The notes below the pieces were generated by a model, which did no database searches, had not been told where the DNA came from, and saw only the letters and a program-made list of their open reading frames with translations. From positions 248,001-312,000 of the IMG/VR virus record IMGVR_UViG_3300050821_013430: DNA of 64,000 bases. One strand, given 5' to 3'. The translations under genes and the position numbers were made by a program. Of this stretch, positions 1,430 to 58,718 are shown in pieces; position 1 is the stretch's first letter; every line of letters begins with the position of its first letter.

Positions 1430-2244
1430 TGTACCTCTGGGAATAATGCGTTGAGTTCTTCTTGATCACGGTTCAATAACAAGCGATACCTTGCGAATTG
1501 ATTGCTTGGCCCGTTGTTGATGATTACGTGATTGCGGCGGAGGAAATCGAGTGTCGTATCGTACTCCTTGGAAGTGATCTTGCACTTCATCGCCTTGTCT
1601 AAATTCTGCTTGATTGTCGTGGTCAATATCGGAGTAGTCGTGTTGAGCAACGAGACCAATTTTTCCGCGATATCCTTCACCTTTGTAGGTGCCTTGTCCA
1701 AAATCGAAGTGATGCTGGGCTTAGCAGATGGTAATCTAATCACCGGTGCTATTGTTGGCAAGGTGAGTTGCGTCGATTTGGTTTTGCCATCTCCAATTCC
1801 AGTACGGATAATTCCAAGCAATTCCTTCTTGCACGAAGTAAAACAAGGAGAGCAAACTTTTCGACCTTTCTTCTCGTACTCTTCGACTGTGCAGGGCCGC
1901 TCCTTAGTTAGTTTTTGTTGGCAGGCAGAAGCAAACACTCCATCCGCATTCTTGACCAAATGCACTTGATGCCCTTCCTTGGCGAAGTAGAGTTCGTTAT
2001 ACTTGCTATGTTTGAGAATGTCTCTCAATCCAATGCGAGGCTCCGGCGGAGCATCGTTCGGCTTTGTCGCCGCTCTCACCGTTTTCGTCTCCGATGTTGT
2101 CTTGACCACCTTCGGCTGAGGCTTGCCCCCGTCGAGGTCAAACTTCTTCGCCAGGTCGAGCGTCAGTTTCATCGCTTGATCGGGATCGTCCATGTACGAA
2201 AAAACCTCCGTGAAAATACCGATTACCGTTTCTTTATCCATCAT
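1426..2244 (-). CDS. hypothetical protein (Cys motif, possible C-terminal winged helix)
   Basis: 272 aa ORF overlapping both neighbours by 4 nt. Confidence 0.7.
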   Translation of the reverse strand: MMDKETVIGIFTEVFSYMDDPDQAMKLTLDLAKKFDLDGGKPQPKVVKTTSETKTVRAATKPNDAPPEPRIGLRDILKHSKYNELYFAKEGHQVHLVKNADGVFASACQQKLTKERPCTVEEYEKKGRKVCSPCFTSCKKELLGIIRTGIGDGKTKSTQLTLPTIAPVIRLPSAKPSITSILDKAPTKVKDIAEKLVSLLNTTTPILTTTIKQNLDKAMKCKITSKEYDTTLDFLRRNHVIINNGPSNQFARYRLLLNRDQEELNALFPEVQ

Positions 2245-2510
2245 CCATTACCTTTCTCTTGATGGGGCTCACCACATTGCGGGCAAATTCCCATTGTTCT
2301 TACCTTGTTGATTGTCTCTTGCCACCCATCCATAAACACACCATCACATTGATCACGATCGTTTTTCCAATACCACTGAGCCTGTTCTCGTATATCAAAC
2401 ACTCGTTGCGAACATCTTCGACAGCATATCTGTTCTGGTCGGTTGCTTACCTTATGTTCATCTTGATTCACAAGACTATACAGCGGCTTCTCACAACAAT
2501 AGCACTTCAT
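2241..2510 (-). CDS. CPQCG-tag family, CxxC-CxxC type
   Basis: CYCC...CCRRC...CPQCGEPH. Confidence 0.8.
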   Translation of the reverse strand: MKCYCCEKPLYSLVNQDEHKVSNRPEQICCRRCSQRVFDIREQAQWYWKNDRDQCDGVFMDGWQETINKVRTMGICPQCGEPHQEKGNG

Positions 2511-2770
2511 TGCTGCTCTCCTTTATGGCTTTCACCACACTGAGGACAAATGCCCATTGCTTTCACTTTCTCGATAGTACCATGCCAATCGCCTAAAAGT
2601 GATACGCTATCATACACACTCCTATAAACGGATTCTTTCCAATAGGATTGGCAGTCTTGCTTGATATCGAATACACGTTGAGAACATCCGCGACAACAAG
2701 TCTTGCCGCTTGCGTAAAACCCATTGCTGGACTTATAGACCGGCTTCTCGCACACATAGCACTTCTCCAT
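2507..2770 (-). CDS. CPQCG-tag family, CxxC-CxxC type (close paralog of 2241..2510)
   Basis: CYVC...CCRGCSQRVFDI...MGICPQCGESH. Confidence 0.8.
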   Translation of the reverse strand: MEKCYVCEKPVYKSSNGFYASGKTCCRGCSQRVFDIKQDCQSYWKESVYRSVYDSVSLLGDWHGTIEKVKAMGICPQCGESHKGEQQ

Positions 2771-3717
2771 TAGACGCTTCCTTCCAAAGTTTTGGCCACC
2801 TCAACGGCCAAATCCGTTTCCTCTTTCACAATGCCCTCGCCTACCACGCATCTCACGAAAGACAACACACGCACTCGTCCCGCCTCTCCGCATAGTGTAG
2901 TCGAGAGTTCATCGGCTAAGGTAGCGATAGTCTTCTTGGCAGTGATAACGCTCTCCTGTTCCAATAAGCAGGCCTCTGAATACCACTTGTTGAGTTTGCC
3001 TTCTGTGATCTTGGGCCAAGAGGCTTCCGGCTTGCCTAACTCCTTCAACTGGGTTTGGAAGATGCCATTCTGGCGCTCAATCAATTCGGGAGCCAGTTTG
3101 TCTCGACTAACCGCGATCGGCGCCATGGCAGCGATCTGCATGCACACATTGTCTGCAAACTCCAAAAAGGACTCGGAGTGCAGGGTATCGGCAGTAGGTG
3201 CCTCGAAGGAAGCCAAAACGCCGATCTTGTCGTTGTTATGAACATAGCGCCAAATCATCCGATTATCGCCCGAAACCTCCTCAACGAAGAAGCGGCGGAC
3301 TTGGATGTTCTCCTTAGTCTTAGCCACCAACTCTTGGCGTTGGACTTCCAACTGCTCGTTTATTGGCTGAGCGGTGGCGAAGTCTCTAACTGCCGAGGAA
3401 AGTAGTTGCTGCTCTATGGCATCGGCGAAGGAGAGAAACTCGGGAGTACGGGCTTGAAAGTCCGTATTCGAGGTTAGTTCGAACATAACGCCCATTGGGG
3501 TGTTGCCATTGGCATGATGAATACGAGCCCTGACAACACCCTCGGTAGCGACTCTGGTCTCGGTGTTCTTGGTCTGCTGCAAACCTCTGGATTTGATCAG
3601 GTCGGTGGCAGCCTCCATCTGGTAATCGGTCTCTTCCAAGGCGCGTTTGACCGCATTCATTGGGGCTTGCGTAGTTTCACGAAGTTGCTTGATGAGTTCG
3701 AGTTTATTGATGGTCAT
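2770..3717 (-). CDS. tsf: translation elongation factor Ts
   Basis: KLELIKQLRETTQAPMNAVKRALEET, ATEGVV, ELTSNTDFQAR, MQIAAMAP, CLLEQ, FVRCVVGEG; start re-called to MTINK. Confidence 0.93.
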   Translation of the reverse strand: MTINKLELIKQLRETTQAPMNAVKRALEETDYQMEAATDLIKSRGLQQTKNTETRVATEGVVRARIHHANGNTPMGVMFELTSNTDFQARTPEFLSFADAIEQQLLSSAVRDFATAQPINEQLEVQRQELVAKTKENIQVRRFFVEEVSGDNRMIWRYVHNNDKIGVLASFEAPTADTLHSESFLEFADNVCMQIAAMAPIAVSRDKLAPELIERQNGIFQTQLKELGKPEASWPKITEGKLNKWYSEACLLEQESVITAKKTIATLADELSTTLCGEAGRVRVLSFVRCVVGEGIVKEETDLAVEVAKTLEGSV

Positions 3718-3997
3718 GATAGGTGTCTTTCTTGGGATGTAATAGTGAGGTGAAAATGGTGCGCTTCCAGCCACATGCAGGACAACAGGCTGTTTTGATC
3801 AGTCGTGAAGGTTTCCACGGTGTGTCGCATTGAAAATTGAACCACATTCTATGAAGAGGCTGCAAACAAGCATCTACTTGTTCTTGCCATGCCTGTTGTT
3901 CTTGTTCGGAAGAAGAAAGCCAGTCTTTGGAAAAATCGAAACCTTGCCAAGTTCGGAACTCATTCCAAAGGCCATCTTGTAAAGTGCTGTTATTCAT
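3704..3997 (-). CDS. hypothetical protein with CPACG motif
   Basis: 3' part of track ORF; the upstream extension overlaps a + strand gene. Confidence 0.55.
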   Translation of the reverse strand: MNNSTLQDGLWNEFRTWQGFDFSKDWLSSSEQEQQAWQEQVDACLQPLHRMWFNFQCDTPWKPSRLIKTACCPACGWKRTIFTSLLHPKKDTYHDHQ

Positions 3998-4048
3998 GAG
4001 GTGAGTGCGATGGGGGCAAAAATTGGCATAGAGTGTAGGGAGATAAAG

Positions 4049-4980: not shown

Positions 4981-5220
4981 TCAATCAACTGGATATTCGT
5001 CTTCGACCGTAGTACCAATAACCAACGGTTTGCCGATTTCCGTCCAATAATCCTCGGTTGCCAATTCTCGGGAGAAGTCTTGCGCGGCTATCTTTTTGGC
5101 CATCTCGAAGGCTTCTTCTTGTGAGGAAGCCTCTATATCTTTGAGAGATGAAAATCGTTGTTCGACAATCACTTCAATCACATAGTGTTTGAGCTTTTGC
5201 TTCTTGGTTCGCTTTTTCAT
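4981..5220 (-). CDS. hypothetical protein
   Basis: ATGA-coupled to upstream tagged ORF. Confidence 0.65.
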   Translation of the reverse strand: MKKRTKKQKLKHYVIEVIVEQRFSSLKDIEASSQEEAFEMAKKIAAQDFSRELATEDYWTEIGKPLVIGTTVEDEYPVD

Positions 5221-5615
5221 TGGTGCTCTTTCCTGCACTGCCCACACAACTTCTTCTCCTTGGCGAACATCCTATCAAGAACGCCATCGGTATAGGCCGC
5301 GTCATCTTCCCCATCATACAGTTCTTCCAATGCCATCTTGGACTTGAACGGCTTGAACAAACCGTCGAGATGACCATCCGATATGCTTCGCCATCGCTTG
5401 GAACGGGTGAGATAGATCACGGCGTTCTCAGTCGAAAGATACCATTCGAGGGCGATGAGTTTGGTATCCTCGAATATCGCGGCGAAACAATGGCCATCAT
5501 TACAATGGGCTCGAAGGGCTTTTTCGTTGTCGGAACGCAGATCGCGCTCAATCTTGCCGAAGGGCTTCTTGCAACGGGGGCAGCCACGCTTTTGTAGGTC
5601 ATCCCAAGTAATCAT
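5217..5615 (-). CDS. CPQCG-tag family variant (CGQCRKEH)
   Basis: CPRC...C..GHC...LCGQCRKEHQ*. Confidence 0.7.
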   Translation of the reverse strand: MITWDDLQKRGCPRCKKPFGKIERDLRSDNEKALRAHCNDGHCFAAIFEDTKLIALEWYLSTENAVIYLTRSKRWRSISDGHLDGLFKPFKSKMALEELYDGEDDAAYTDGVLDRMFAKEKKLCGQCRKEHQ

Positions 5616-5818
5616 CTGCCACAATCCTTTCCACACTGCGGGCACATCCCAAACGGAAACTCCATAAAGAATCTAACCATCGAGTCTATATCGCTTGGGG
5701 AGAACTTGATTGTGGTAGTGGGCTTGTAATCCAAACTTCCACCGCCAGGCAGGTGCAAATCCTCATTACGCAGCGAAACACACTTTCCAGTAGTATGGTC
5801 GTATATGGCTTGGCTCAT
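5612..5818 (-). CDS. CPQCG-tag family variant, unrelated body
   Basis: Ends MCPQCGKDCGR*; ATGA coupling. Confidence 0.65.
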   Translation of the reverse strand: MSQAIYDHTTGKCVSLRNEDLHLPGGGSLDYKPTTTIKFSPSDIDSMVRFFMEFPFGMCPQCGKDCGR

Positions 5819-5822
5819 CTGA

Positions 5823-6293
5823 CTAACATCCCCACGGCATCTCTCTGGCAATCATCTCTACATCTGCCAACTCTACCCAATCCGTGCTTTCATCGATGAT
5901 GCCAATCTTCTCTAACCAAGCATCGGCAATCCATCTGGTACCCTTATAGCCAGCAATAACGGGGCCTATACCACCGTCATTGAGATGCAGAAACTGAAAC
6001 GGTAGGTTTTGATTGCCTCGACTGACGACATCTTTGTTGGGAAGGGGAAGTGTAGTGGAAAAGGCCCTGCTCAATTTGGGGCGATCCAGGTGCATTCGGG
6101 CTATCCCTAACTGGCAGGTCGAGTTGCCCATCCCTCGGTAGAGCTCGAACGGATAGATGGTCATCGAGGAACAATGACCGATGACATCCATATTGTCTCC
6201 CACACAAACAAGGATTTTGGGGGTGGGTTTGGGTGGTGCTTTGGCTAATCCTAATTGGAAGAGCAGGTTATGGATGGTGCGTTTGAGGTTCAT
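5823..6293 (-). CDS. hypothetical protein
   Basis: Coupled ORF. Confidence 0.65.
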   Translation of the reverse strand: MNLKRTIHNLLFQLGLAKAPPKPTPKILVCVGDNMDVIGHCSSMTIYPFELYRGMGNSTCQLGIARMHLDRPKLSRAFSTTLPLPNKDVVSRGNQNLPFQFLHLNDGGIGPVIAGYKGTRWIADAWLEKIGIIDESTDWVELADVEMIAREMPWGC

Positions 6294-11256: not shown

Positions 11257-11903
11257 TTCACCATACTCTTTACTGGCTCGTACGAAACCCGATGCAAAGG
11301 CGTTGCTCCATATTTCTTCAACGCGGCCTTATGGTCTTTTGTCCCATATCCCGAATTTTCGGCCCATCGATACTCAGGATGTAATTGTCCCCAAATTGCC
11401 ATCCTTCCATCTCGATAGCATTTGGCCAGAATTGAGGCTGCCATCACCTGGGGAACGAAGTTATCGGCCTTGGGCAACCATCTGACATCGGTCATATTGG
11501 CGGGAGGCTCTCCCTTGGGTCGTGCTCCGTCTATAATGAGATATGAAGAGGTTTTGAGGTCGGTTTGGGCCTTGGCTACCATCGTACCAATCGCCTCGCT
11601 AAACGCCTCTGAGAGGCATTGAGTAATACCGTAATGGTCAATATGGAGATTAGAGCGCTCTGCAATGGCAAAGCCTATCTCTCTCCGTTCATATGCGGCT
11701 CCGATAATTGCTCGCATTTCTTCTCGACGCTTCTTGGAAAGAGCCTTGCTATCGTTGAGACCCTCTAATGTCCAGGATTTAGGGGCAAGAATGGCACAAC
11801 AAACACACGGGCCTGCAAGTGCGCCCGTACCGACATCATCCGCCCCTATCACCCAATCCTGAGTAATATGACTAAGTTCTTCTTCCCATCGTTTATCCAT
11901 CAT
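11250..11903 (-). CDS. rnhB: ribonuclease HII
   Basis: IGADDVGTGALAGP, LNDSKAL, IIDG, KADN...MAASILAKCYRD, GYGT..H...GATPLHRVSY. Confidence 0.92.
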   Translation of the reverse strand: MMDKRWEEELSHITQDWVIGADDVGTGALAGPCVCCAILAPKSWTLEGLNDSKALSKKRREEMRAIIGAAYERREIGFAIAERSNLHIDHYGITQCLSEAFSEAIGTMVAKAQTDLKTSSYLIIDGARPKGEPPANMTDVRWLPKADNFVPQVMAASILAKCYRDGRMAIWGQLHPEYRWAENSGYGTKDHKAALKKYGATPLHRVSYEPVKSMVKW

Positions 11904-12100
11904 CGGTGATCCAATCCGCATTGTTGACAGCAGCCAGAAAGACCTGAGCCGTTGCAAACGGGACAAGTTCGGGCTCCGACATTCTCAGGTTCGTTGTAAT
12001 CGAGATATTGCTCCTGACCTTCACCACCACAATTGGAACAGGCGCCAGGCGGAAAAATGGTCTCGCTCTTTTCGATCAATTTCCAATCGAAGTCTCTCAA
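11900..12100 (-). CDS. CPQCG-tag family variant (DnaJ-like CxxCxGxG body)
   Basis: CSNCGGEG...CPVCNGSG...CQQCGLDHR*; probable TTG start overlapping the upstream stop. Confidence 0.6.
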   Translation of the reverse strand: MRDFDWKLIEKSETIFPPGACSNCGGEGQEQYLDYNEPENVGARTCPVCNGSGLSGCCQQCGLDHR

Positions 12101-12300
12101 TGGGTTTCTCCGCATTGAGGACATCGTTCTACTACGACAAAGCGTAATTGGCTATAACTGCCTGGCAGCCCACTGATCTTGTAGTCGGGGTTGTGCACTT
12201 CTGCGTCATACACCTGTCCCAAAACCAGTTGCATCTCCTTATCGAAGTATTCCGGCGAGGCATTGAACCTGTTGGAGACATCAATGCACTTGACTTTCAT
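12097..12300 (-). CDS. CPQCG-tag family, MKVKCID type
   Basis: MKVKCID...LGQVY...RFVVVERCPQCGETH*. Confidence 0.8.
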   Translation of the reverse strand: MKVKCIDVSNRFNASPEYFDKEMQLVLGQVYDAEVHNPDYKISGLPGSYSQLRFVVVERCPQCGETH

Positions 12301-12482
12301 GGATGTATCTCTCCACATTGGGAACAAGCATTACTCGGCACAATTTGGAAGCGGTGCTTGAACCACCACCCAGCACCTTTCAAATGATAACCATCACCGT
12401 ATTCAGAAATCACTTCATAAACCCTGCCTTCAAATAATGGCATACGAATACAATCACACCCTTCTACACACTTGACTTTCAT
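12297..12482 (-). CDS. CPQCG-tag family, MKVKCID type
   Basis: MKVKCVE...GRVYEV...WFKHRFQIVPSNACSQCGEIHP*. Confidence 0.8.
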   Translation of the reverse strand: MKVKCVEGCDCIRMPLFEGRVYEVISEYGDGYHLKGAGWWFKHRFQIVPSNACSQCGEIHP

Positions 12483-12697
12483 TAGTGAGTTTCTCCGCAT
12501 TGAGGACAACGCTCGCCCTCTTTGACTATCACGAAACGGTTGCTACGCCACCAATCAGACAAACCTATTAGGTGGTACATCGTCATATTGAGGGTGGAAG
12601 AGTGGTATGCGCTAAGCACTTCATACTCTTTGTCTATTACGAGATCGCTTTTCTGATCCAGATCGCCCGGAGCAGCATCTATACATCTAACTCTCAT
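12482..12697 (-). CDS. CPQCG-tag family, MKVKCID type
   Basis: MRVRCID...KEYEV...RFVIVKEGERCPQCGETH*. Confidence 0.8.
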   Translation of the reverse strand: MRVRCIDAAPGDLDQKSDLVIDKEYEVLSAYHSSTLNMTMYHLIGLSDWWRSNRFVIVKEGERCPQCGETH

Positions 12698-12966
12698 TGA
12701 TGTACCTCTCCACATTGATGGCAACGAGACTTCTTCGCGAAGGCTTCCAATTCGGCAATGATGCCTTTATTGAACCACCAACGAGGTAATTGGTTATCAT
12801 CCCTAACTATATCCAAAGCGCCCCACGCACGGGTGGCGAAGTCCTGATGCCATTGTGCTAAGGTAGAGAAACACTTAGCACACCAGAGATACCAGTCTTC
12901 ACTGGTGTAGTTTTTGGTTCCGGGCATTGATATGCCGCAACACTTGCAATTAGCCATCTTTTCCAT
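12694..12966 (-). CDS. CPQCG-tag family, CxxC-CxxC type
   Basis: CKCC...CAKC...CHQCGEVHQ*. Confidence 0.8.
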   Translation of the reverse strand: MEKMANCKCCGISMPGTKNYTSEDWYLWCAKCFSTLAQWHQDFATRAWGALDIVRDDNQLPRWWFNKGIIAELEAFAKKSRCHQCGEVHQ

Positions 12967-19334: not shown

Positions 19335-19604
19335 TCAGTGTTTTTCTCCGCACTGAGGGCAATTTTCTTCGGCTATCAGTTTTTTGAGGGCCTCATAGAA
19401 CTCATCGCCATCTTCGAGAACGAAAGAGTAGAGAGACTGCGTTTTGAGATCGTTCCATAGGCTGCCCCCAACGACTTCACGGACTCGATAAGCACACGGC
19501 CCACATACCACGCCAATGAACGATTTTGGATCGAAGACAAGTCTATAATGGTAAGACCATCCCTCGGTCAGTAGTTTGCGACAAAGAGGACACTTATAGT
19601 CCAT
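19335..19604 (-). CDS. CPQCG-tag family, CxxC-CxxC type
   Basis: MDYKCPLC...CGPC...CPQCGEKH*. Confidence 0.8.
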   Translation of the reverse strand: MDYKCPLCRKLLTEGWSYHYRLVFDPKSFIGVVCGPCAYRVREVVGGSLWNDLKTQSLYSFVLEDGDEFYEALKKLIAEENCPQCGEKH

Positions 19605-19848
19605 GTCGTTCTCCGCACTGAGGACAATATCCGAGTTTGATCCTGGCCTTGTATAAGGCACTAACGAAACTTGGGCTTCCCCCATCCACACAGAAAGTCC
19701 ATCCTGCTTCCGTACCCGCATACCACTCAGCATGGAACGGCTCTCCCTTTTCCCGATACACCAATTCAGCGCAGGACAGGCATGTAATCCCAATATTAGC
19801 ACCTATTTCCCTGGGTATTGAACATTGACACAAGAAACACTTAGACAT
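19594..19848 (-). CDS. CPQCG-tag family, CxxC-CxxC type
   Basis: CFLC...CLSC...CPQCGERHGL*. Confidence 0.8.
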   Translation of the reverse strand: MSKCFLCQCSIPREIGANIGITCLSCAELVYREKGEPFHAEWYAGTEAGWTFCVDGGSPSFVSALYKARIKLGYCPQCGERHGL

Positions 19849-20029
19849 GCACTTCTCCGCATTGAGGGCAAGGCTCTTCCACTACCTCAAAGCGAGTTTT
19901 GGCCCAGCACAATCGCTTATTCTCGACCAATTCATAGTGGTTTTTGTGCTCTACTGCGACCGTATAAACTACGGTCATACCGAGAGTGCCGTGGCCAAAC
20001 CCACGATCATTGATGCATCTTACCTTCAT
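19841..20029 (-). CDS. CPQCG-tag family, MKVKCID type
   Basis: MKVRCIN...RFEVVEEPCPQCGEVHV*. Confidence 0.8.
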   Translation of the reverse strand: MKVRCINDRGFGHGTLGMTVVYTVAVEHKNHYELVENKRLCWAKTRFEVVEEPCPQCGEVHV

Positions 20030-20286
20030 AGGTGTTTCTTTCCGCACTGAGGACAATTGCCGTTCTTTCTGCTTTGCAGAATATCCAACACCGCCTTATC
20101 CAAAGGCGAGTCGCCGTTATAGCCAGTTGCTCCGTATTGTCGATACATTCCCGGTAGTCCTAATTTACTTACTGCTTGAACAGCAGGATGTTGATAGGCA
20201 ATTTCAGCACAAGGAATGCAAAGAAACTTAGAACAGCCACTAAGCGCCGTATGTACTTCGATTCTGCATATCTCGCAGTTATTCAT
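20026..20286 (-). CDS. CPQCG-tag family, CxxC-CxxC type
   Basis: CEIC...CIPC...CPQCGKKHL*. Confidence 0.8.
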   Translation of the reverse strand: MNNCEICRIEVHTALSGCSKFLCIPCAEIAYQHPAVQAVSKLGLPGMYRQYGATGYNGDSPLDKAVLDILQSRKNGNCPQCGKKHL

Positions 20287-20473
20287 GTCGCTCTCCACAT
20301 TGGGGACAACCATTCTCTGGCACCTCTACAAAACGCCACTTGAAAAAGACCCAATGCGGATTTCCTAACTCATAGCAATCAGATCGGCTATAATTGGAGC
20401 GAGTTCGATATACCTGGCCCAAAACAAGCCATCCACTGATATCGCCGCTTACATCAATGCACTTGACTCTCAT
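20279..20473 (-). CDS. CPQCG-tag family, MKVKCID type
   Basis: MRVKCID...LGQVY...RFVEVPENGCPQCGERHE*. Confidence 0.8.
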   Translation of the reverse strand: MRVKCIDVSGDISGWLVLGQVYRTRSNYSRSDCYELGNPHWVFFKWRFVEVPENGCPQCGERHE

Positions 20474-20730
20474 TGATGCTTTTCTCCACACTGCGGGCAG
20501 TACAATTCCGCTCGGGCTTTGAGAATGGCTTTTTGGGTAGCCAGATGCCTACCATCTTTCTTTTCCTTCCCATAGCAGATAAATCCCGAACAAGAGCAGG
20601 TGTATTGGGCACCATAGTCTTGCTCTAACATCTTAGCGCAAGGATCGCATAGGTATCCAATACCAGCCCAACCATGCTTGTCAATTAGGCAACTACAAAG
20701 ATCACAGCGTTTTTCCAGATTAGGCATCAT
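20470..20730 (-). CDS. CPQCG-tag family, CxxC-CxxC type
   Basis: CDLC...CDPC...CPQCGEKHQ*. Confidence 0.8.
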   Translation of the reverse strand: MMPNLEKRCDLCSCLIDKHGWAGIGYLCDPCAKMLEQDYGAQYTCSCSGFICYGKEKKDGRHLATQKAILKARAELYCPQCGEKHQ

Positions 20731-30412: not shown

Positions 30413-30562
30413 TTATTGAACGGCGAAGCCCTTCCTTCGGCTCGGTCTATTGTTGAGCAGATATTGAGTCCAACACTTAGGGCATCCGTCTACGAAAGTA
30501 CGCGTGGGCACCGGCAGGCGCTTGGCTCTGTATTTCGGATGGGTTTTACACTTGGCTTTCAT
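30413..30562 (-). CDS. small hypothetical protein (49 aa)
   Basis: MKAKCKTHPKY...GCPKCW; SD lies inside the upstream tag. Confidence 0.5.
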   Translation of the reverse strand: MKAKCKTHPKYRAKRLPVPTRTFVDGCPKCWTQYLLNNRPSRRKGFAVQ

Positions 30563-31360: not shown

Positions 31361-31386
31361 GGGTACCTCTACATTACTGACTTGTT

Positions 31387-39362: not shown

Positions 39363-39563
39363 CTATTTAGAGCGCTTCTTACGAGGCTTGATCTCTTTGA
39401 CCTGACACCCAAGTTCTTCGAGAGGAGCGACCAGACTGATCTGCATCTTCTCCAACTTCTCCTTGTGTTTGTTGAGAGAACGGACTGCACCCTCTTCGGA
39501 CTTGGCGTTGCAGGTGTAGGTGAGTTTGACAACTGCGTGATAGGAGGCTTTGTATCGCTTCAT
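39363..39563 (-). CDS. hypothetical protein
   Basis: ATGA-coupled to tagged ORF. Confidence 0.6.
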   Translation of the reverse strand: MKRYKASYHAVVKLTYTCNAKSEEGAVRSLNKHKEKLEKMQISLVAPLEELGCQVKEIKPRKKRSK

Positions 39564-39805
39564 TGATGATACCGTTTGCATTGATGGCATCGTTGAGGAA
39601 CGGAGATGCCAAGTTGTTCGATATACTCTGTCCAAACCCTGATGGTAAAGGCATTGCCTCCGGATTGCTGGTAGATCCCCGCTGAAACGGGGTAATTGGC
39701 CTCTGCCGCGAGTTTCGCAGAACAGGATGGACAGGCTGCCATTTGATCGGCGTGCATTGCGAATGACAGTTTGACCTCGGCAGTTTGGCAGATGAAGCAC
39801 TTCAT
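39560..39805 (-). CDS. CPQCG-tag family, CxxC-CxxC type
   Basis: CFIC...CPSC...CHQCKRYHQ*. Confidence 0.75.
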   Translation of the reverse strand: MKCFICQTAEVKLSFAMHADQMAACPSCSAKLAAEANYPVSAGIYQQSGGNAFTIRVWTEYIEQLGISVPQRCHQCKRYHQ

Positions 39806-40664: not shown

Positions 40665-41033
40665 CTACTGAGAATGAACGAGACCACATTGAGAACAGGC
40701 GTTTTCTTCAACCACTACAAAACGATCTTGAAACCAAGGGTTGCCGGATACTTCTGCCAACACGTACCCGCATTGCGGACACGCTCCATAGTAGTCGATA
40801 GTGTTTCGCACCGCCCTCTCATGAGCATAATGACCTTTCAGCATCTCGATCCTTTTCCCGTTCTTGACGAACTCTTTCCAGGAGTCGCCAGGGAATAGGT
40901 CTTGTCTCAACGCAGTGGTGCGGTCATAGATGCCCTTGGCGCAGGAGCAACAAAACTCGTACCAGCCAGGACTAAACTCTTTGTCTTCGCAAGAAGAGTA
41001 CTGGCCGCACATGTCGCACTTGAACTTGATCAT
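40665..41033 (-). CDS. CPQCG-tag family, fused double-tag unit
   Basis: CDMC...CCSC...CPQCG-YVLAEVSGNPWFQDRFVVVEENA-CSQCGLVH. Confidence 0.78.
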   Translation of the reverse strand: MIKFKCDMCGQYSSCEDKEFSPGWYEFCCSCAKGIYDRTTALRQDLFPGDSWKEFVKNGKRIEMLKGHYAHERAVRNTIDYYGACPQCGYVLAEVSGNPWFQDRFVVVEENACSQCGLVHSQ

Positions 41034-41040
41034 CGATATC

Positions 41041-41340
41041 TCACGAAGGGTAAGGAGTGGGCGTAATGTCGTGTACAAACCCACACTGACCGCAGGTAGT
41101 CCAGTGAGACTTGACTTGCTCGACCGCAGCGGCAAAGTGCGGATTGCTTCTGCTGTAAAAGAAGCCCCTTTTGTCCGCTTCTGTATGCGCTATCCGTTTA
41201 TGCCAGCCATACTCTGATCGGTCTGCATAGAAGCCCGGCGCATGGAGGAAGACCTCCCTCGCACAAACGGGACACAAGTGCCAGTAGGCATCATATTGCT
41301 TGCCAATCACCCCGACGCCACATAGATCGCACTTGTTCAT
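41041..41340 (-). CDS. CPQCG-tag family, CxxC-CxxC type
   Basis: CDLC...CPVC...CGQCGFVH. Confidence 0.78.
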   Translation of the reverse strand: MNKCDLCGVGVIGKQYDAYWHLCPVCAREVFLHAPGFYADRSEYGWHKRIAHTEADKRGFFYSRSNPHFAAAVEQVKSHWTTCGQCGFVHDITPTPYPS

Positions 41341-41636
41341 TGGCTCACCTCTAACTGAATGGGCGGAACCCAATGACACATTCCACACTGCAAACAAGTA
41401 CCATACTCGGCTTTGATGGCCTTGATAGTCTGATCGAATGAAGGATAGTCGACATAGTTGAATCCACCACCACGCCCATCGAATATCTCGTTCCATTTGA
41501 GCCATGCTTGTTCAGAATGATCGGGGAAGAAAGCGTCCCGAAGGAATATCTGCTTGGCGCAATGGACACACACCTTACGATATTCTGAGCGAAGGTCGAA
41601 GTCTAACTTGACGCCGCATATGTAGCACACACTCAT
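41337..41636 (-). CDS. CPQCG-tag family, CxxC-CxxC type
   Basis: CYIC...CVHC...CLQCGMCH. Confidence 0.78.
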   Translation of the reverse strand: MSVCYICGVKLDFDLRSEYRKVCVHCAKQIFLRDAFFPDHSEQAWLKWNEIFDGRGGGFNYVDYPSFDQTIKAIKAEYGTCLQCGMCHWVPPIQLEVSQ

Positions 41637-44416: not shown

Positions 44417-44590
44417 TCAACGACCACAATGATATCCACACCCACACTTTCCGTTGCGACAATAGACCTTCTCGGCCCAAAAGTGCCAAGACCGCGGGTG
44501 CTTACACTCCGTACAGACCTCTCCTTTCGAGAAGCCAAAGCGCCACCATAACCACCAAGCATAGTGTTGCAAGTCGCGATACCAGTTCAA
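44417..44590 (-). CDS. small Cys-rich protein
   Basis: CTECKHPRSWH...C..GKCGC; probable TTG start inside upstream tag stop. Confidence 0.5.
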   Translation of the reverse strand: MNWYRDLQHYAWWLWWRFGFSKGEVCTECKHPRSWHFWAEKVYCRNGKCGCGYHCGR

Positions 44591-44850
44591 TGCACATCCC
44601 CACACTGAGTGCAGCGACTACTAATTGCTTCCTTCACTCTTCCTTCGTTCCAATTATCCCACCCCGTATATCCATGTTCCAAATTGGTATCATCAATTGA
44701 TGGTATCCATAGGCTATGACCAGCCTTGCTTATGGCCTGCTTGTAGATAAGGCAGCAGGCTTTACACATCACAATGTGCTTGCTGGTGGTATAATGCCCT
44801 GGCCTACATATCACGCTCTGCTTACAATGCAGGCACTTATGCTCGTTCAT
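44587..44850 (-). CDS. CPQCG-tag family, CxxC-CxxC type
   Basis: CLHC...CKAC...CTQCGDVH*. Confidence 0.78.
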   Translation of the reverse strand: MNEHKCLHCKQSVICRPGHYTTSKHIVMCKACCLIYKQAISKAGHSLWIPSIDDTNLEHGYTGWDNWNEGRVKEAISSRCTQCGDVH

Positions 44851-45287: not shown

Positions 45288-45536
45288 TCAGTGTACCTTT
45301 CGACATTGAGGACAAGTCTTCCCAATCATCCTGTCTACCTGGCCAGCAAACTTCGGGGAGCTATTACTGAACGACCACCAATTACCCTCTGATTCGTGCT
45401 GAGCGTCCGAGGCACCTTCTTCGTCTCCTATCTCACGATAGACTTCCGCCGCACAATCAATGCAGAGCATACGATGCTTCATTTGGTTGGCGGACGGATG
45501 GACTATTCTCAAACAGAGTTCGCACGGCTTTTCCAT
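45288..45536 (-). CDS. CPQCG-tag family, CxxC-CxxC type
   Basis: MEKPCELC...CIDC...CPQCRKVH*. Confidence 0.8.
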   Translation of the reverse strand: MEKPCELCLRIVHPSANQMKHRMLCIDCAAEVYREIGDEEGASDAQHESEGNWWSFSNSSPKFAGQVDRMIGKTCPQCRKVH

Positions 45537-45545: not shown

Positions 45546-45746
45546 TCAGTGTTGAATGCCACATTGCGGACAGGAGCCGGGCGCAAGCACTGTAAAGTGC
45601 CAGGCATAGTACCACGCTAATAGGCCCAGGTTATTGATCAGTTGATAATCACCCACATTGTCGGGGTTCGATACCGTATAGACCTTCCCCACGGTCAACT
45701 TGTTCTCATCTACACCAGTGGTGTTGATGCACTTGACTTGCTTCAT
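45546..45746 (-). CDS. CPQCG-tag family, MKVKCID type
   Basis: QVKCIN...LTVGKVYTV...CPQCGIQH*. Confidence 0.8.
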   Translation of the reverse strand: MKQVKCINTTGVDENKLTVGKVYTVSNPDNVGDYQLINNLGLLAWYYAWHFTVLAPGSCPQCGIQH

Positions 45747-45759: not shown

Positions 45760-46017
45760 TTAGTGTTTCAGACCACACTGCGGACAATGGCCACGCTTGA
45801 TGCGTAGTATTTCCAGCCCTTCGGCAATGTTCTTGCTAGTCTTGTCGAAGTCCCACCATCCCTCAGTGTCTCTCTCGGCACGGTCTCGTCTTTCGCGATC
45901 CCCCACTTCCACATAGGCATCTACGGCGCAAGTAGTACACACCACTCGTCGTGTAAGAACTTCCACGCGCGAAGGACATTCCAATACCTTCGAACACAAT
46001 TCACAGTGTCTTGTCAT
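45760..46017 (-). CDS. CPQCG-tag family, CxxC-CxxC type
   Basis: CELC...CTTC...CPQCGLKH*. Confidence 0.8.
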   Translation of the reverse strand: MTRHCELCSKVLECPSRVEVLTRRVVCTTCAVDAYVEVGDRERRDRAERDTEGWWDFDKTSKNIAEGLEILRIKRGHCPQCGLKH

Positions 46018-49841: not shown

Positions 49842-50010
49842 CGATCATCTCACGAAGGTGCTTCTTGGTTTGGTGCAATTCGCAGCCGCTGGTATGGCAG
49901 AACTTGTTGATGTCATAGCACACCGGGCAATGCTCGTAGTAGACAAACTCAAAGCGATCAAGGAAGGTCAGTGCAGAGGTAAGCGTTTGTTGGGTAGTAG
50001 GGGTGTTCAT
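49828..50010 (-). CDS. small zinc-binding protein
   Basis: CPVC...HTSGCEL. Confidence 0.55.
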   Translation of the reverse strand: MNTPTTQQTLTSALTFLDRFEFVYYEHCPVCYDINKFCHTSGCELHQTKKHLREMIDERN

Positions 50011-50231
50011 TGATGGACTTTCCGGCATTGAGGGCAGACTTTGAGTAGGTCATCGCGGAAGGACTCGGGCCAAAGATCATAGTCCATACCGCTTCGCCAG
50101 AGGCGATTACCCTTAGACGCATAGTAGGCCTTGGCACAAGGAGTGCATACGTAAACTCTGGCTTCCAAAGGTACATCGTAGGAAAGCCAGATCTCGGCAT
50201 GACAGATCAGGCATTGAGTAATGCAACTCAT
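50007..50231 (-). CDS. CPQCG-tag family, CxxC-CxxC type
   Basis: CLIC...CTPC...CPQCRKVHQ*. Confidence 0.8.
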   Translation of the reverse strand: MSCITQCLICHAEIWLSYDVPLEARVYVCTPCAKAYYASKGNRLWRSGMDYDLWPESFRDDLLKVCPQCRKVHQ

Positions 50232-50455
50232 TGATGAAACCCTTTGCATTGTGGGCAGTGGGCCTGAACGAGACGATCGTGCTGTTCACTGCGCTTTCCG
50301 ATCAGTCCGTAAGGAATGACACAATCCTTCACAACGGAGACTCGGCCTATGATCTTCCCAGCCTTTCCAGCGCAGGCAAGACACAAGTAGGTAGCATTAC
50401 CCGCACCACCACGAGTGCTGTCAATGAGGGCTTGGCAAAAGAAACAGTTGATCAT
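50228..50455 (-). CDS. CPQCG-tag family, CxxC-CxxC type
   Basis: CFFC...CLAC...CPQCKGFHQ*. Confidence 0.8.
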   Translation of the reverse strand: MINCFFCQALIDSTRGGAGNATYLCLACAGKAGKIIGRVSVVKDCVIPYGLIGKRSEQHDRLVQAHCPQCKGFHQ

Positions 50456-51831: not shown

Positions 51832-52082
51832 TTAGACCTCATGAATATGCAGGCATTGGGGGCAGGCGTGGCTCTTATGCTGCTCTAAGAGAGGCCAATG
51901 TCGCCAAACTCGTTCTTCAACGGATACATCTCAAAACGAGTATCCTTATGCAGGTTGGTGTAGTAGTCCCAACCGTTCTTGCGCTCTAACATGAGGACAT
52001 CGTGGTAGATGCCATCATCGCTGGGGGCGATCCAAAGTCGTAGGGGGCCATAGCAATGATCAACGCCGGATACTATCGACAT
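51832..52082 (-). pseudogene. probable frameshifted tag-family unit
   Basis: ORF 51885..52082 stops 5' of an out-of-frame CPQCLHIHEV* tag at 51832..51864. Confidence 0.45.
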
Positions 52083-52624
52083 GCCTGCTCCTTGCAAAGG
52101 AAAGTGATGTCATCTTCATAGAGGTGAAAGTCCGTTTCAACTTCATGCCTGATGGCTTCGTTCATTATAGCCGGGTGTTCAATACTGAGATCAGGTAAGT
52201 TCATGACATGGCCAAACTCATGCGAAGCGAACACTCTCAACTCCGACATTCTACTCACTCGATCTTCCATTAGCCAGATCGTATTGGTCGCAGGCTCATG
52301 CAATCCCATCGTCCAGAGCCCCGGATGATCATAGGTGCTCGTGATCCATCGTCTCTTCTCCCCAAACGGTATCTTGACTTGAATGGCATTGGGCTCGCAA
52401 CGCTCGACAAACCTTGCCTCAGGCGCCCTATAATCCCATATGGCCGCGCCCTCTCTAATCATCTGCTTCTCTTGATCGGAGAAACCATCGCTGATGCAAT
52501 ATGATCGCTGCACGAAGGCAGGGCGTTCAACGCTGCGATGTAGGAAGGTAAGTGTCCAAACCAGAATGACAGCAATCAGAGCGAAGCGTAAGCCTAAGGA
52601 AAGCCAGATGGACTTGAAGGTCAT
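52073..52624 (-). CDS. matrixin-like zinc metalloprotease with N-terminal anchor
   Basis: HEFGHVMNLPD...AIMN; start coupled to upstream tag. Confidence 0.72.
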   Translation of the reverse strand: MTFKSIWLSLGLRFALIAVILVWTLTFLHRSVERPAFVQRSYCISDGFSDQEKQMIREGAAIWDYRAPEARFVERCEPNAIQVKIPFGEKRRWITSTYDHPGLWTMGLHEPATNTIWLMEDRVSRMSELRVFASHEFGHVMNLPDLSIEHPAIMNEAIRHEVETDFHLYEDDITFLCKEQACR

Positions 52625-52854
52625 TGGTGTATCTCTCCACATTGAGGACAAGGGGGATGCAATCGCATCTCCTCGATGAGAGCGTTCCACTTGTATTGAG
52701 GGGACAGAGAGAAACGACAAGGGTTGGTTTCCAAACCCCCGTCATGACGCTTCCATAATCGACCAGAGCACCTGCCGCAACACAATACCATCTCATCAGA
52801 AGGGCCAAGGCCATACGATACGCTGGCTGAACACACATAGCACGGATTGATCAT
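52621..52854 (-). CDS. CPQCG-tag family, CxxC-CxxC type
   Basis: CYVC...CCGRC...CPQCGEIHQ*. Confidence 0.8.
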   Translation of the reverse strand: MINPCYVCSASVSYGLGPSDEMVLCCGRCSGRLWKRHDGGLETNPCRFSLSPQYKWNALIEEMRLHPPCPQCGEIHQ

Positions 52855-55136: not shown

Positions 55137-55405
55137 GGATGCCTCTGATAGCATTGAGGGCAGATATCGCAGATGACAGCCACCTTCCTCGCGGCCGAAG
55201 CATACTTGCCTCCCTCCGCCTCGAAAGGCCAATGAGTGAAACCCTCATCGCGTATAAGGCTATCATCAACGGAAGTCCATATGTCCTTCAATGAGCCTTT
55301 GAGGGACGAACAGCACTCTGAACACAAGATGACAGAAGGAAGATACACCTGAGCAAAGCCTCTGGCATCGAAGGATTTTCCGCAACGGCAACAACACCAG
55401 TTCAT
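55133..55405 (-). CDS. CPQCG-tag family, CxxC-CxxC type
   Basis: CCRC...CSEC...CPQCYQRHP*. Confidence 0.8.
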   Translation of the reverse strand: MNWCCCRCGKSFDARGFAQVYLPSVILCSECCSSLKGSLKDIWTSVDDSLIRDEGFTHWPFEAEGGKYASAARKVAVICDICPQCYQRHP

Positions 55406-55665
55406 GGATGAATCCTTTCGCATTGAGGACACAAGGGATACTTGGGTGTGATGGCGTCAATGAAGAGTCGGTTTTCCGACCACCAAGTATAACCGCACTG
55501 CTCGATCATAAGTTGGCATCCGTACGTCCAAAGTCCATTCACGCTAAGAAGCGTCTTCATGTTCTCTAAGCAGCAGTCTCGACACCAACTAACACGATCG
55601 AAACCGATCTCCCTTGTACCGTTTGTCCTTATCTCTTTGCCACAGTGAGCGCAAGGGAAGATCAT
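55402..55665 (-). CDS. CPQCG-tag family, CxxC-CxxC type
   Basis: CAHC...WCRDC...CPQCERIHP*. Confidence 0.8.
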   Translation of the reverse strand: MIFPCAHCGKEIRTNGTREIGFDRVSWCRDCCLENMKTLLSVNGLWTYGCQLMIEQCGYTWWSENRLFIDAITPKYPLCPQCERIHP

Positions 55666-55943
55666 CCGTGAACTCTCCTACACTGCGGACAAACCGAAGG
55701 CAAGGGAAGAAGCGCTTCCGCTCGCTTGGCTCGATCGGTCATATTGGGACGATCCAAGATCCAACGAGTGTATGGCTGATAGTCCAGCATGTGTTGATCG
55801 TCCTCTCCCCAGATCCCATTATCGACCAGCAGTTGTTTATCGATCATGCAACACTCTTTGCACCAGAAGACGTTCAGGTCGGTATAAGCGTATTCAACGG
55901 TCGTGATGAGTCGACCGCAGTGATGGCACCAGATCTGCTGCAT
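55662..55943 (-). CDS. CPQCG-tag family, CxxC-CxxC type
   Basis: CHHC...WCKEC...CPQCRRVHG*. Confidence 0.8.
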   Translation of the reverse strand: MQQIWCHHCGRLITTVEYAYTDLNVFWCKECCMIDKQLLVDNGIWGEDDQHMLDYQPYTRWILDRPNMTDRAKRAEALLPLPSVCPQCRRVHG

Positions 55944-56224
55944 TAGTGCTTCTTTCGGCATTGGGGGCACACGCCTTCAACAGGCATGATAGCGGCCACC
56001 TTGGCTGCTTGCTCCGCAAACACCACCCAACGCTCTAACGGCCAATGCGTATAGCCGTACTTTTCGAGTAGGCCTCGATCTTGGCCATCTATATTCACCT
56101 TCGAGGAGAGCAGGGCTGCATAGTCGGTGCAGCACTTCTTGCACCAAACGATAGTGGGCCCATAGTCTTCCAGATGCCCCTGCGAATCGATCGGGGCCGC
56201 ACAGTGATTACACGAGTACTCCAT
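55943..56224 (-). CDS. CPQCG-tag family, CxxC-CxxC type
   Basis: CNHC...WCKKC...CPQCRKKH*. Confidence 0.8.
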   Translation of the reverse strand: MEYSCNHCAAPIDSQGHLEDYGPTIVWCKKCCTDYAALLSSKVNIDGQDRGLLEKYGYTHWPLERWVVFAEQAAKVAAIMPVEGVCPQCRKKH

Positions 56225-57468: not shown

Positions 57469-57705
57469 TCAGTGTTTGAGACCACACTGGGGGCATCGTG
57501 CAAGGACGTCCAGTTGGGACTCCCAGTATGTAGACCACGCCACTCCGTCGTGTTGCTTGTAGAAGATGGGGTAATCTCGCTCCCAATCGCAGCCGATGTA
57601 GTCGTAGACACGCTTGGAACAAGCGAGACAGGCTATCTTGGGCGAATACGAGGAAAGGCCATAGGGCTTATGACAAGTCGTTCCACAGAATATGCACTTA
57701 TGCAT
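57469..57705 (-). CDS. CPQCG-tag family, CxxC-CxxC type
   Basis: CIFC...CLAC...CPQCGLKH*. Confidence 0.8.
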   Translation of the reverse strand: MHKCIFCGTTCHKPYGLSSYSPKIACLACSKRVYDYIGCDWERDYPIFYKQHDGVAWSTYWESQLDVLARCPQCGLKH

Positions 57706-57949
57706 GTAGATCTCCACATTGAGGGCAATGGCCCATCCTGACTTTGACTACCGAGACAGCAAGATCCAATCTGTCCGCGCTCCCAATACTACTTTCCCAT
57801 GTCCATCCGTTTTTGATTCCCCAATCAAGGGGAGGGAATCGACCACAATACTCTTTGTACACCGGCTGCAAACACTTGGCACAAAGGATCTTCTCACAAG
57901 CCGATAGGCTCCTGTCAATGAAGACCTTGCAGATCATGCAATTAGCCAT
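57698..57949 (-). CDS. CPQCG-tag family, CxxC-CxxC type
   Basis: CMIC...CAKC...CPQCGDLHA*. Confidence 0.8.
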   Translation of the reverse strand: MANCMICKVFIDRSLSACEKILCAKCLQPVYKEYCGRFPPLDWGIKNGWTWESSIGSADRLDLAVSVVKVRMGHCPQCGDLHA

Positions 57950-57986
57950 GATGTAGCCCTCCACATTGGGGACAGCGGATGATCAA
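57942..57986 (-). other. 'empty' tag-only mini-ORF (14 codons, TTG start)
   Basis: TTG ATC ATC CGC TGT CCC CAA TGT GGA GGG CTA CAT CAT GGC TAA = (M)IIRCPQCGGLHHG*. Confidence 0.6.
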
Positions 57987-58264
57987 TGGACTTCTCCGCA
58001 CTGAGCGCATCTTACGCCCTGTTTATGGGCCTTATCGATATACTGCTCCCAATTATCGGGATACAGGGTGCCATCGGTATTGGGATACCACTCATCGTAG
58101 TTGGCTTTACATCTCTCCACCTCAGACGGAGAGTACTCACCATAAACAGCAGGAGAACAAGTCTTGCAAACCGCCAGCGGAGAATAGCCAACAAACGAGG
58201 CAGCATGAACGCGGTAAAGAGGTTTCAAGCAGAGAAAGCAGATATGAGTAGGGTTAGTGTTCAT
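57983..58264 (-). CDS. CPQCG-tag family, CxxC-CxxC type
   Basis: CFLC...CKTC...CAQCGEVH*. Confidence 0.8.
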   Translation of the reverse strand: MNTNPTHICFLCLKPLYRVHAASFVGYSPLAVCKTCSPAVYGEYSPSEVERCKANYDEWYPNTDGTLYPDNWEQYIDKAHKQGVRCAQCGEVH

Positions 58265-58467
58265 TGGCATAGTCCTATCTGGTTAGAGACGAGGCCGGAG
58301 CCAAGAATGGCCAAGGCCACACCCCATACGAAGAGGGCAATGAATAGGTAGAGGAAGGCATAGTTGACCGGATCTGTTTTGATCCGAGCGTCTTTATGCA
58401 GGTAGGCAAGGAAGACGAAGACAAAGGCGCTGACCACGAAGTAGAGGATGTTCCACCAGTACATCAT
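58261..58467 (-). CDS. small membrane protein
   Basis: Two TM segments; coupled to tag. Confidence 0.6.
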   Translation of the reverse strand: MMYWWNILYFVVSAFVFVFLAYLHKDARIKTDPVNYAFLYLFIALFVWGVALAILGSGLVSNQIGLCQ

Positions 58468-58718
58468 GAGTGAACACACTTACACTGAGGGCAGGTCAAC
58501 TCTTTTCTGACCGCTCTTAGTTCGGTAATCCAACCTTCTGCGAAACACACGGCATCAACTCTTTTAGCGGCTATCACGGCCAATCTCTCTTCCTCCTGCC
58601 CTTTATAGACAGAACTGACTTGATAGGTCTTCTTACCACATGGAAAACAGGTCATAAAGACCGCCCATTCAGGCATCAATCGTTGTAAGGTGGTTCCACA
58701 GCAAAAGCAAGTGTTCAT
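58464..58718 (-). CDS. CPQCG-tag family, CxxC-CxxC type
   Basis: CFCC...CFPC...CPQCKCVHS*. Confidence 0.8.
   Translation of the reverse strand: MNTCFCCGTTLQRLMPEWAVFMTCFPCGKKTYQVSSVYKGQEEERLAVIAAKRVDAVCFAEGWITELRAVRKELTCPQCKCVHS

Follow-up and report, generated by a model that had tools for sequence, protein, structure and literature searches.

A C-terminal C-x-Q-C-x3-H tail shared by small proteins with unrelated bodies in a jumbo-phage-type genome

Why would dozens of small proteins with unrelated bodies end in the same eight residues? The question is raised by a 64,000 nt stretch of DNA (the window; positions 248,001 to 312,000) of the 472,749 bp IMG/VR contig IMGVR_UViG_3300050821_013430, which is of jumbo-phage type. 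The window has a GC content of 49% and carries almost all of its genes on one strand. Many of its short open reading frames (ORFs) close with the motif C-x-Q-C-x3-H, referred to below as the tag or tail, and the tagged proteins are predicted from these reading frames. An earlier note on this DNA had described about 46 such ORFs, in clusters, as a modular cassette system with a common ending on several unrelated bodies.

Six-frame translation of the window gave 46 matches to the motif, all of them on the minus strand, inside the clusters listed earlier, and followed by a stop codon 0–11 residues past the tag. The chance level is 0 or 1 match per shuffle (30 mononucleotide shuffles of the window). 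The earlier count of tagged ORFs is therefore right for the motif and slightly too high for genes, since 44 of the matches are the ends of intact ORFs (61–142 aa, median ~86 aa) and two are remnants, or ghosts (57942-58010 and 51832-51930). Similarly, the cluster placed at 5217-5818 retains the tagged gene 5217-5645, while ORF 5612-5851 ends in CPQCGKDC and, with its His changed to Cys, falls outside the motif. The glutamine is truly invariant and no artefact of the search pattern, because the relaxed pattern C-x-x-C-x3-H still shows Gln at position 3 in 84 of the 85 coding-strand ORFs of this phage that end with it near the stop. The sole ORF without Gln (window 23667-23831 (-)) ends in CGLCGFFH plus 7 residues, which may be related to the tag and diverged, or may have arisen by chance. 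The tail consensus is C-[P]-Q-C-[G]-x-x-H; 80% of 218 tagged proteins have 0–1 residues after the His, and up to 11 residues occur in some tails.

By a crude census (n = 44), tagged genes make up about one third of the ~135 coding-strand ORFs of the window and 18% of its bases. Six further loci of the same contig (L001, L008, L041, L044, L048 and L063) hold ~43 more, giving ~86 intact tagged genes and three ghosts in ~116 kb sampled from this phage. As this is about a quarter of the genome, the count is a lower bound, and the whole genome probably carries about a hundred. The longest ORFs often misplace the start: N-termini resembling MSSMRRN- or MPSMWRG- are the upstream tag read in another frame, and the actual N-termini (MKVKC.., METQ.., M..C..C) begin in an overlap with the preceding stop. 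Loci in IMG/VR were gathered with a degenerate DNA pattern for CPQCGE..H, and several map exactly into the window. The first scan with this approach also returned 33 single-match contigs, whose near-stop matches proved to be chance or ordinary CPQCG knuckles and were rejected as members; in a later scan, 13 of 13 metagenome matches were true family members.

The tag is under long-term purifying selection as a peptide. Among 85 tags, the two Cys codons are split TGT/TGC 43:42 and 42:43, the Gln codon CAA/CAG 48:37 and the His codon CAT/CAC 49:36, the same usage as in the gene bodies. Synonymous sites of the tags are not identical in excess (207 identical pairs against 221 ± 12 expected), and the tags of adjacent genes resemble each other no more than randomly drawn pairs do (0.487 vs 0.499). 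Synonymous variation is thus free and not homogenised, so that selection must act on the peptide. This agrees with the earlier reading of the wobble positions, where synonymous codons are used at close to 50:50 in tags as in bodies, and speaks against its suggestion that the tag could be a recombination handle, since synonymous positions of the tag have reached saturation and not even adjacent genes have homogenised tags. Orthologs in a related contig (L073, see below) keep C, Q, C and H through 2–8 nucleotide changes per tag, with bodies 54–72% identical.

The DNA of the tag also carries a second code. Its 3′ half reads TGY-GGA-GAR-NNN-CAY, followed by 0–1 codon and the stop, and the next ATG overlaps the His codon or the stop, so that the GGAG(A) of the Gly-Glu codons sits 6–9 nt upstream of the ATG of the next gene. 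A downstream start lies within -14 to +8 nt of the stop in 68 of 85 tagged genes, 40 of them with ATGA overlaps. Tags use GGA for this Gly in 58% of cases, against 21% for Gly in bodies, and a sequence resembling a Shine-Dalgarno (SD) site is present in 68% of coupled tags and 29% of uncoupled ones. These patterns show, at the level of sequence, that the 3′ half of the tag is dual-coded as an SD site and start region, which would couple translation of the next gene. Codon choice, and the Glu or Lys at position 6, are shaped by this ribosome-binding site. Pro2 and Gly5 are kept whether or not the next gene is coupled, and the 17 uncoupled tagged genes retain C-P-Q-C-G..H and lose the SD bias; C-P-Q-C-G..H is therefore a protein-level feature. 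The role of the tag as a ribosome-binding site explains the Gly-Glu/GGAGA bias and does not explain the invariant C, Q, C and H. An earlier reading of the sequence had missed this overlap with the next ribosome-binding site. As a case of overlapping codes the locus is a clean one: the same 24 nucleotides spell both a protein motif and the ribosome-binding site of the following gene.

The bodies to which the tail is attached are diverse. All-against-all BLASTP of the tag-stripped proteins gave one large family and about nine unrelated groups (~10 in total). The large one, family B (~54 members seen), has an N-terminal CxxC..CxxC domain; at a mean column identity of 17% it has eight invariant columns, namely four N-terminal Cys followed by the C, Q, C and H of the tag. 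Family A (6 members seen) has an MKVKC.. body with an invariant Cys5, which is kept also in untagged relatives that have no other Cys, e.g., P0169. Family C (5 members) has an ME[TF].. body with its own CxxC..CxH site, and by their sequences bodies B and C both hold complete four-ligand sites of their own. In family E (5 members; FNVW..RWT..REVLxDGSPG), conserved Cys and His residues occur only in the tag. Smaller groups are family G (3 members; ..YGW), family F (2–3 members; SH3-like by sequence), family H (2 members; a small body) and several singletons of up to 214 and 232 aa. Family I has three members in this phage and five more in L073 (99–129 aa, helical-looking by sequence composition only), and in 7 of 8 an extra Cys follows 2–4 residues past the tag His (C-x-Q-C-x3-H-x2-4-C), predicted to make a complete Cys2-His-Cys knuckle. 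The four body classes distinguished earlier (A, B, C and one-offs) hold, and further classes lie outside the window.

Structure prediction separates body from tail in the two members modelled with AlphaFold2. The family B protein 31387-31641, modelled from an alignment of 51 paralogs, has a predicted local distance difference test (pLDDT) score of 89 overall, 92–95 over residues 1–70 and 62–68 in the tail; the family A protein 12097-12300 scores 83 overall, 84–93 in the body and 61 in the tail. The family B model has no fold match in the PDB (Foldseek, best E 0.78). SH3 domains lead the top fold matches of the family A model, at non-significant values (best E 0.35, template modelling score 0.52–0.57), and the SH3-like C-terminal domain of DtxR is also among them. 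A sequence-profile search of the PDB gave generic Zn-ribbon noise for family B (E >= 0.015) and nothing for family A.

The earlier statement that no described family has this architecture stands in all of the collections searched. Ten representatives of all body types, searched as whole proteins, had no Pfam match at gathering score. The zinc families considered included Zn_ribbon_6/8/15/19, DZR, zf-Tbcl_FmdE and LIM; the best match of this type was family C to Zn_ribbon_6 (19.2 bits vs a cut-off of 25), with the others lower. Ten further bodies matched no Pfam family at all, none of 10 tagged proteins had a PHROGs family at E <= 0.01, one tagged protein searched by tblastn in 50,697 phage records had no hit, and a literature search on the motif string returned irrelevant matches only. 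The one-off body 11900-12100 reaches 21.2 bits against the central cysteine-rich domain of DnaJ (PF00684; cut-off 32.7), having two CxxCxGxG repeats where four are required. The family A protein 45546-45746, with its small MKVKCI..RFxVV body, is weakly matched by DUF6501 (PF20111; 18.6 bits, E 0.0017, gathering score 23.8), a family that has neither the tail nor a known function. Precomputed DUF6501 matches also fall on neighbours of the untagged or alternatively tailed family A relatives in L057 and L058.

Comparison of the bodies with their relatives shows, at the sequence level, that the tail is separable from them. A family B profile search of 1.84 billion representative proteins gave 173 matches; among the best 150 of these, 113 have the tag at their end (proteins of 64–145 aa, 26 of them from the loci analysed here). 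The untagged matches are multi-repeat proteins such as P0001, which has 19 tandem untagged B bodies in 3,226 aa, and P0003, both with two CxxC per repeat. As untagged repeats have two CxxC each, the B body is a self-sufficient four-Cys domain, to which the Cys2-His of the tail is extra. The P0001 gene (L056 10001-19681) lies on a 36 kb, phage-like Logan contig (SRR21686417) with small genes, and each repeat ends in '..IPKK' directly before the next C.HC knuckle. Judged by its sequence, P0001 looks like a fused counterpart of the tandem arrays, or the arrays like a split P0001. As for body A, members from the clade carry the C-x-Q-C-x3-H tail (P0155-P0165), those of a second contig group have ECPCG..QCxYH in its place (P0166-68, P0171 and six tandem L057 genes), and P0169 and P0170 lack a metal tail. 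The six tandem A-type (DUF6501-like) bodies of L057 (9400-11511; JGI 3300076650, a 52.8-kb contig) share one four-ligand tail, Y-x-P-[DN]-x-E-C-P-C-G-x5-C-x-Y-H, and thus form a parallel, single-family case in another phage group; a TnpB/Cas12f-like gene (15094-16215) lies near this array. These relatives bear out the idea of a modular tag on unrelated bodies.

The tail is also inherited on each body family over long distances. The same tagged families are found in relatives that have no detectable DNA similarity to the window phage (L051, with a GC of 45%, L052-L055, L060, L061, L064, L065, L068 and L069). Gene order in L051 is as in L048 (three G genes, an acidic Cys-rich protein, five B genes, then C), and in L054 the C genes adjoin a 5′-3′ exonuclease, as they do in the window (33497-34355, beside the exonuclease gene at 32663-33493). 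Such comparisons of sequence show the tail passing down with its body across this divergence. The closer relative L073, a 285,913-bp contig with 70–77% DNA identity to the window phage, shows turnover at the level of single genes: it has one B gene at the place of a tandem pair in the window phage and, between conserved flanks, a 71-aa tagged gene with an unrelated, helical body at the site that a B-type tagged gene and an untagged ORF occupy in the window phage. Such a change of tagged body at one genomic position further supports the modular reading of the tag.

Traces of the same process are visible within the window. The chimera 40665-41033 begins with a B body, continues with an internal CPQCG and the C-terminal half of body A, and closes with the tag. 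The ghost 57942-58010 starts 8 nt past the stop of 57983-58264 (11 nt past its His codon), out of frame, and supplies the GGAGG and ATG of 57698-57949. The tag at 51832-51930 is out of frame with the 70-aa upstream ORF 51885-52097 and is, from its sequence, a probable frameshifted member. Duplication, body replacement and ghost tags together show cassette-like turnover in phage early regions.

What might such a tail do? We favour, tentatively and with slightly less than even confidence, the reading that it is an autonomous Cys2-His metal knuckle serving as a shared docking or oligomerisation handle, its metal site being completed from outside. The tail would be a knuckle of the rubredoxin/zinc-ribbon 'CPxCG' type with an added His, put on many unrelated small proteins by a clade of jumbo phages. 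We infer metal binding only from the CPxCG consensus and the invariant ligands. Most members would present three ligands (Cys, Cys and His) and an invariant, probably exposed Gln; because most tails offer only these three ligands, on a flexible end, completion from outside is proposed. The fourth ligand could be contributed by a partner that all of them share, a hub of host or phage origin, or by a second tagged protein. The handle would gather about a hundred different, rapidly evolving small bodies in one place, where they might serve host takeover, anti-defence or regulation. Among metals, zinc is the likeliest on present sequence evidence, and iron may also be possible, because a gene for an IscA/HesB-type Fe-S carrier lies directly upstream of one array. 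This gene (Pfam Fe-S_biosyn, C-terminal CGCG) is found at L044 4675-5016 (-) and at L073 6405-6725 (+), in both cases directly upstream of the tagged array and preceded by adenylosuccinate synthase. A sharper form of the proposal treats the incomplete three-ligand knuckle as an addressing code, completed by one residue on a single hub, be it host machine or phage scaffold, into which ~100 proteins per genome would plug; this we regard as unlikely, if worth stating.

Several points weigh against a shared handle completed from outside, and most of them feed its main competitor, an intramolecular staple in which the tail stabilises its own small protein through a ligand of its own body or the C-terminal carboxylate. 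The low pLDDT of the tail may only reflect the blindness of AlphaFold to metals, or the shortness of the tail. Family I completes a Cys2-His-Cys site with its own fourth Cys, and in the chimera 40665-41033 the tag has another CPQCG knuckle as its counterpart, the two surrounding a hairpin as in a classical zinc ribbon; intramolecular completion is therefore possible. The invariant Cys5 of family A could be a fourth ligand, a candidate that is weakened by its retention in untagged relatives without other Cys (P0169). No candidate hub was found in the quarter or so of the genome examined. A staple would also suit proteins with a median length of ~86 aa and tails that, in 80% of cases, place the carboxylate 0–1 residues past the His; the tail would then recur because new array genes form through duplication, fusion and exchange of the body, all of which leave the 3′ end in place, and both tandem duplication and body replacement are observed. 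Set against this, family E lacks any further conserved Cys or His, bodies B and C already hold complete four-ligand sites, the tail scores a pLDDT of only 61–68 in both models, and stability alone would leave an invariant Gln at an exposed CPxCG position unexplained. We regard a staple as possible and, on the whole, rather unlikely. An address or degradation signal, read by a dedicated machine (virion packaging, export, a compartment importer, or a protease/unfoldase) and merely shaped by metal binding, would account for a tail at the extreme C-terminus of unrelated bodies, as in classical sorting signals, for strict conservation of the non-ligand residues Pro2, Gln3 and Gly5, and for its retention by orthologs across deep divergence. 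It is nevertheless improbable: no reader machine has been identified, up to 11 residues past the His are tolerated, and the motif is a textbook metal knuckle. It also overlaps the docking reading, from which sequence data alone cannot separate it.

Two further explanations place the function in gene expression. If the tag DNA were a junction element, a cassette linker that provides a ribosome-binding site and start and/or a short recombination homology, with the peptide as a by-product, one would expect what is seen at the gene boundaries: GGAG(A) 6–9 nt before an ATG that overlaps the His codon or stop, ATGA at 40 of 85 junctions, ghost tags without bodies that persist at just those places where the following gene draws its start from them, and cassette content that varies between related phages. 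Yet synonymous positions in the C, Q, C and H codons show saturation with neither linkage nor homogenisation, the 17 uncoupled genes keep C-P-Q-C-G..H without the SD bias, the first four tag codons lie upstream of the SD, and ATGA overlaps with neighbours occur also in untagged genes of the window. As the sole cause, a junction element is largely refuted by these sequence data, and we give it little weight overall. A nascent-peptide regulator, whose last 8–10 residues would promote re-initiation on the overlapping start from within the exit tunnel, would fit conserved residues that lie within that distance of the end in most members and stops that mostly overlap the next start. The tag is, however, kept by uncoupled genes, some tails have 5–11 extra residues, and the motif is a canonical metal knuckle; we know of no arrest peptide that resembles it, and consider this explanation very remote.

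The proposed docking handle can be set beside several known systems. Bacillus phage G (~500 kb) carries a lineage-specific expansion of ~35 zinc-ribbon copies, for which Iyer et al. 2021 (PMC7824862) suggested a possible role in DNA binding or as transcription factors. The two cases are alike in having dozens of small Cys-rich paralogs in tandem arrays with a conserved C-terminal motif in a ~500-kb phage. They differ in that the phage G proteins are one paralog family with an N-terminal CPIC..C.xC ribbon and a helical C-terminal 'YWKENDRYL' motif, and no tag is common to unrelated bodies. Membership in the same family was ruled out, as the C-x-Q-C-x3-H tail is absent from gp32, 34, 35, 37 and 46, and the family B profile, run with hmmsearch, had no match in 50 kb of phage G. 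A short metal-binding tail on diverse proteins is best matched, as an analogy, by SEC-C (PF02810), the C-terminal metal-binding tail of SecA that is also found on many unrelated proteins. SEC-C of SecA docks SecB and the ribosome, and is cellular and single-copy. Both are short Cys/His tails at the extreme C-terminus of diverse bodies, with metal binding predicted for the phage tag, but SEC-C has four ligands (C-x-C-x8-C-[HC]) and the tag has three, C-x2-C-x3-H in all 85 members, plus an invariant Gln. PF02810 was absent from the Pfam matches of the ten representatives even at E <= 1; the alternative tail of L057 (C-P-C-G-x5-C-x-Y-H) looks closer to SEC-C, and is also without a Pfam match.

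The retroviral-type CCHC knuckle (zf-CCHC; C-x2-C-x4-H-x4-C) is autonomous and has ~14 residues. Family I tails share its ligand order, Cys-Cys-His-Cys, but the spacing differs (C-x2-C-x3-H in the tag), the fourth Cys occurs only in family I, and the tails have neither the nucleic-acid-binding aromatics nor a Pfam match. Intermolecular zinc sites are known from the Rad50 zinc hook (a CPxCG-type CxxC from each of two chains), the CD4/CD8-Lck zinc clasp and HIV Tat-cyclin T1. There, an incomplete Cys/His set on a flexible element is completed by another chain, as is proposed for the tail; the analogy is one of mechanism only, not of sequence family. Poxvirus ankyrin-repeat proteins combine a variable recognition part with a constant PRANC/F-box-like C-terminus that plugs into an SCF ligase. 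Like the phage proteins, they are many paralogs with a variable N-terminal part and a constant short C-terminal element; unlike them, they belong to eukaryotic viruses and have one body type and a known partner, whereas the phage bodies are mutually unrelated. What is distinctive and undescribed here is that a single tail recurs across some ten unrelated families of bodies and, in each genome, on about a hundred genes. To our knowledge, a 'tag-and-hub' arrangement of this kind has not been described in phages.

An ending that is kept on unrelated bodies through divergence that erases all DNA similarity implies a common and important interaction, and its partner, once found, would give a large block of jumbo-phage 'dark matter' a first functional handle in one step. 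With proteins of 60–100 aa and a tail of 8 aa, the system is experimentally tractable, and if the tail were indeed a portable metal-dependent docking peptide it might be of use as a tool. The tagged genes of the window, with the variant ORF and the two remnants, are listed in Table 1.

Table 1. Tagged genes, the variant ORF and tag remnants in the window. In the tail column, +n is the number of residues past the tag His.
Position	Strand	Body	Tail	Remarks
2241..2510	-	family B (CxxC..CxxC body)	CPQCGEPH+6	
2507..2770	-	family B	CPQCGESH+5	
5217..5645	-	one-off	CGQCRKEH+1	~142 aa, start uncertain
5612..5851	-	variant ORF	CPQCGKDC	His-to-Cys, outside motif
11900..12100	-	one-off		two CxxCxGxG repeats (DnaJ-like, under Pfam cut-off); TTG start
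12097..12300	-	family A (MKVKC.. body, possibly SH3-like)		
12297..12482	-	family A		
12482..12697	-	family A		
12694..12966	-	family B		
19335..19604	-	family B		
19594..19848	-	family B		
19841..20029	-	family A		
20026..20286	-	family B		
20279..20473	-	family A		
20470..20730	-	family B		
30546..30833	-	family B	+6	
30826..31098	-	family B		
31091..31390	-	family B		start uncertain (GTG 31390 or ATG 31360)
31387..31641	-	family B		AlphaFold2-modelled member
33497..33775	-	family C (METQ.. body, own CxxC..CxH site)		adjoins 5′-3′ exonuclease gene
33772..34059	-	family C		
34059..34355	-	family C		
39560..39805	-	family B	CHQCKRYH+1	
40665..41033	-	chimera		B body, internal CPQCG (no His), A-body C-terminal half, tag
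41041..41340	-	family B	+9	ATG at 41340 overlaps upstream stop
41337..41636	-	family B	+11	
44587..44850	-	family B		start as in relative P0079
45040..45285	-	family B		
45288..45536	-	family B		
45546..45746	-	family A		weak DUF6501 match
45760..46017	-	family B		
50007..50231	-	family B		
50228..50455	-	family B		start as in P0102
51619..51831	-	family B		
51832..51930	-	tag remnant	CPQCLHIH+2	end abuts ATG of 51619-51831
52621..52854	-	family B		start as in P0061
55133..55405	-	family B		C.HC..WC..C..GYT.W subfamily
55402..55665	-	family B		C.HC..WC..C..GYT.W subfamily
55662..55943	-	family B		C.HC..WC..C..GYT.W subfamily
55943..56224	-	family B		start as in P0005
56691..56945	-	family B		start as in P0067
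57220..57462	-	family B		
57469..57705	-	family B		
57698..57949	-	family B		
57942..58010	-	ghost cassette	CPQCGGLH+2	second tag copy, no body
57983..58264	-	family B		start as in P0030
58464..58718	-	family B		

The remaining genes of the window include phage-type genes for GIY-YIG, HNH and LAGLIDADG homing endonucleases, a 5′-3′ exonuclease, RNase HII and a phrog_2141 protein. The last is only 41–42% identical to its relatives in Phapecoctavirus-type phages, and megablast of 13 kb against the 50,697 phage records found no close isolated phage. A scan of the window for sigma-70 promoters gave 9 sites compared with 12.9 expected from shuffles, and is thus uninformative. A full-length EF-Ts homolog is encoded at 2773-3774 (-) (Pfam EF_TS, E 2.5e-49). 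In the GTDB species genomes, the nearest cellular relatives of this homolog fall consistently in Polyangiales/Polyangiaceae (Myxococcota), at 36–45% identity, and sit on true bacterial contigs of 64–72% GC. This kinship of sequences gives a weak hint that the host lineage may be Myxococcota, despite the GC of 49% of the phage. Two tRNA genes were predicted, tRNA-Gly(tcc) at 7077-7152 (-), above the Rfam tRNA gathering score, and tRNA-Leu(caa) at 27261-27342 (-), below it.

Five genes are of homing-endonuclease type (two HNH_3, two GIY-YIG and one LAGLIDADG-like; 13999-15075 (+), 18716-19285 (-), 21513-22112 (-), 22168-23343 (+) and 28275-29246 (-)), and several directly flank tagged arrays. 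The HNH gene 13999-15075 lies inside a low-GC patch (~43%) at 13000-15600. Three tandem paralogs of 169–185 aa with conserved C-terminal '..CGG.T...' motifs (34358-35990 (-)) are directly upstream of the family C tagged genes. Two adjacent ORFs encode Kelch-repeat beta-propellers (8587-9585 (+) and 9632-10582 (+); Pfam E 1e-28 and 4e-30) on the strand opposite to nearly every other gene. ORF 16769-17881 (-) contains a Phi_1 (phosphate-induced protein 1/EXORDIUM-like) domain (E 6e-25), which is known mostly from plants and is unusual for a phage. Two ORFs of auxiliary-metabolism type lie among the arrays, one alliinase/aminotransferase-like (46268-47260 (-), E 9e-18) and the other weakly FGE-sulfatase-like (39805-40689 (-), E 1e-4).

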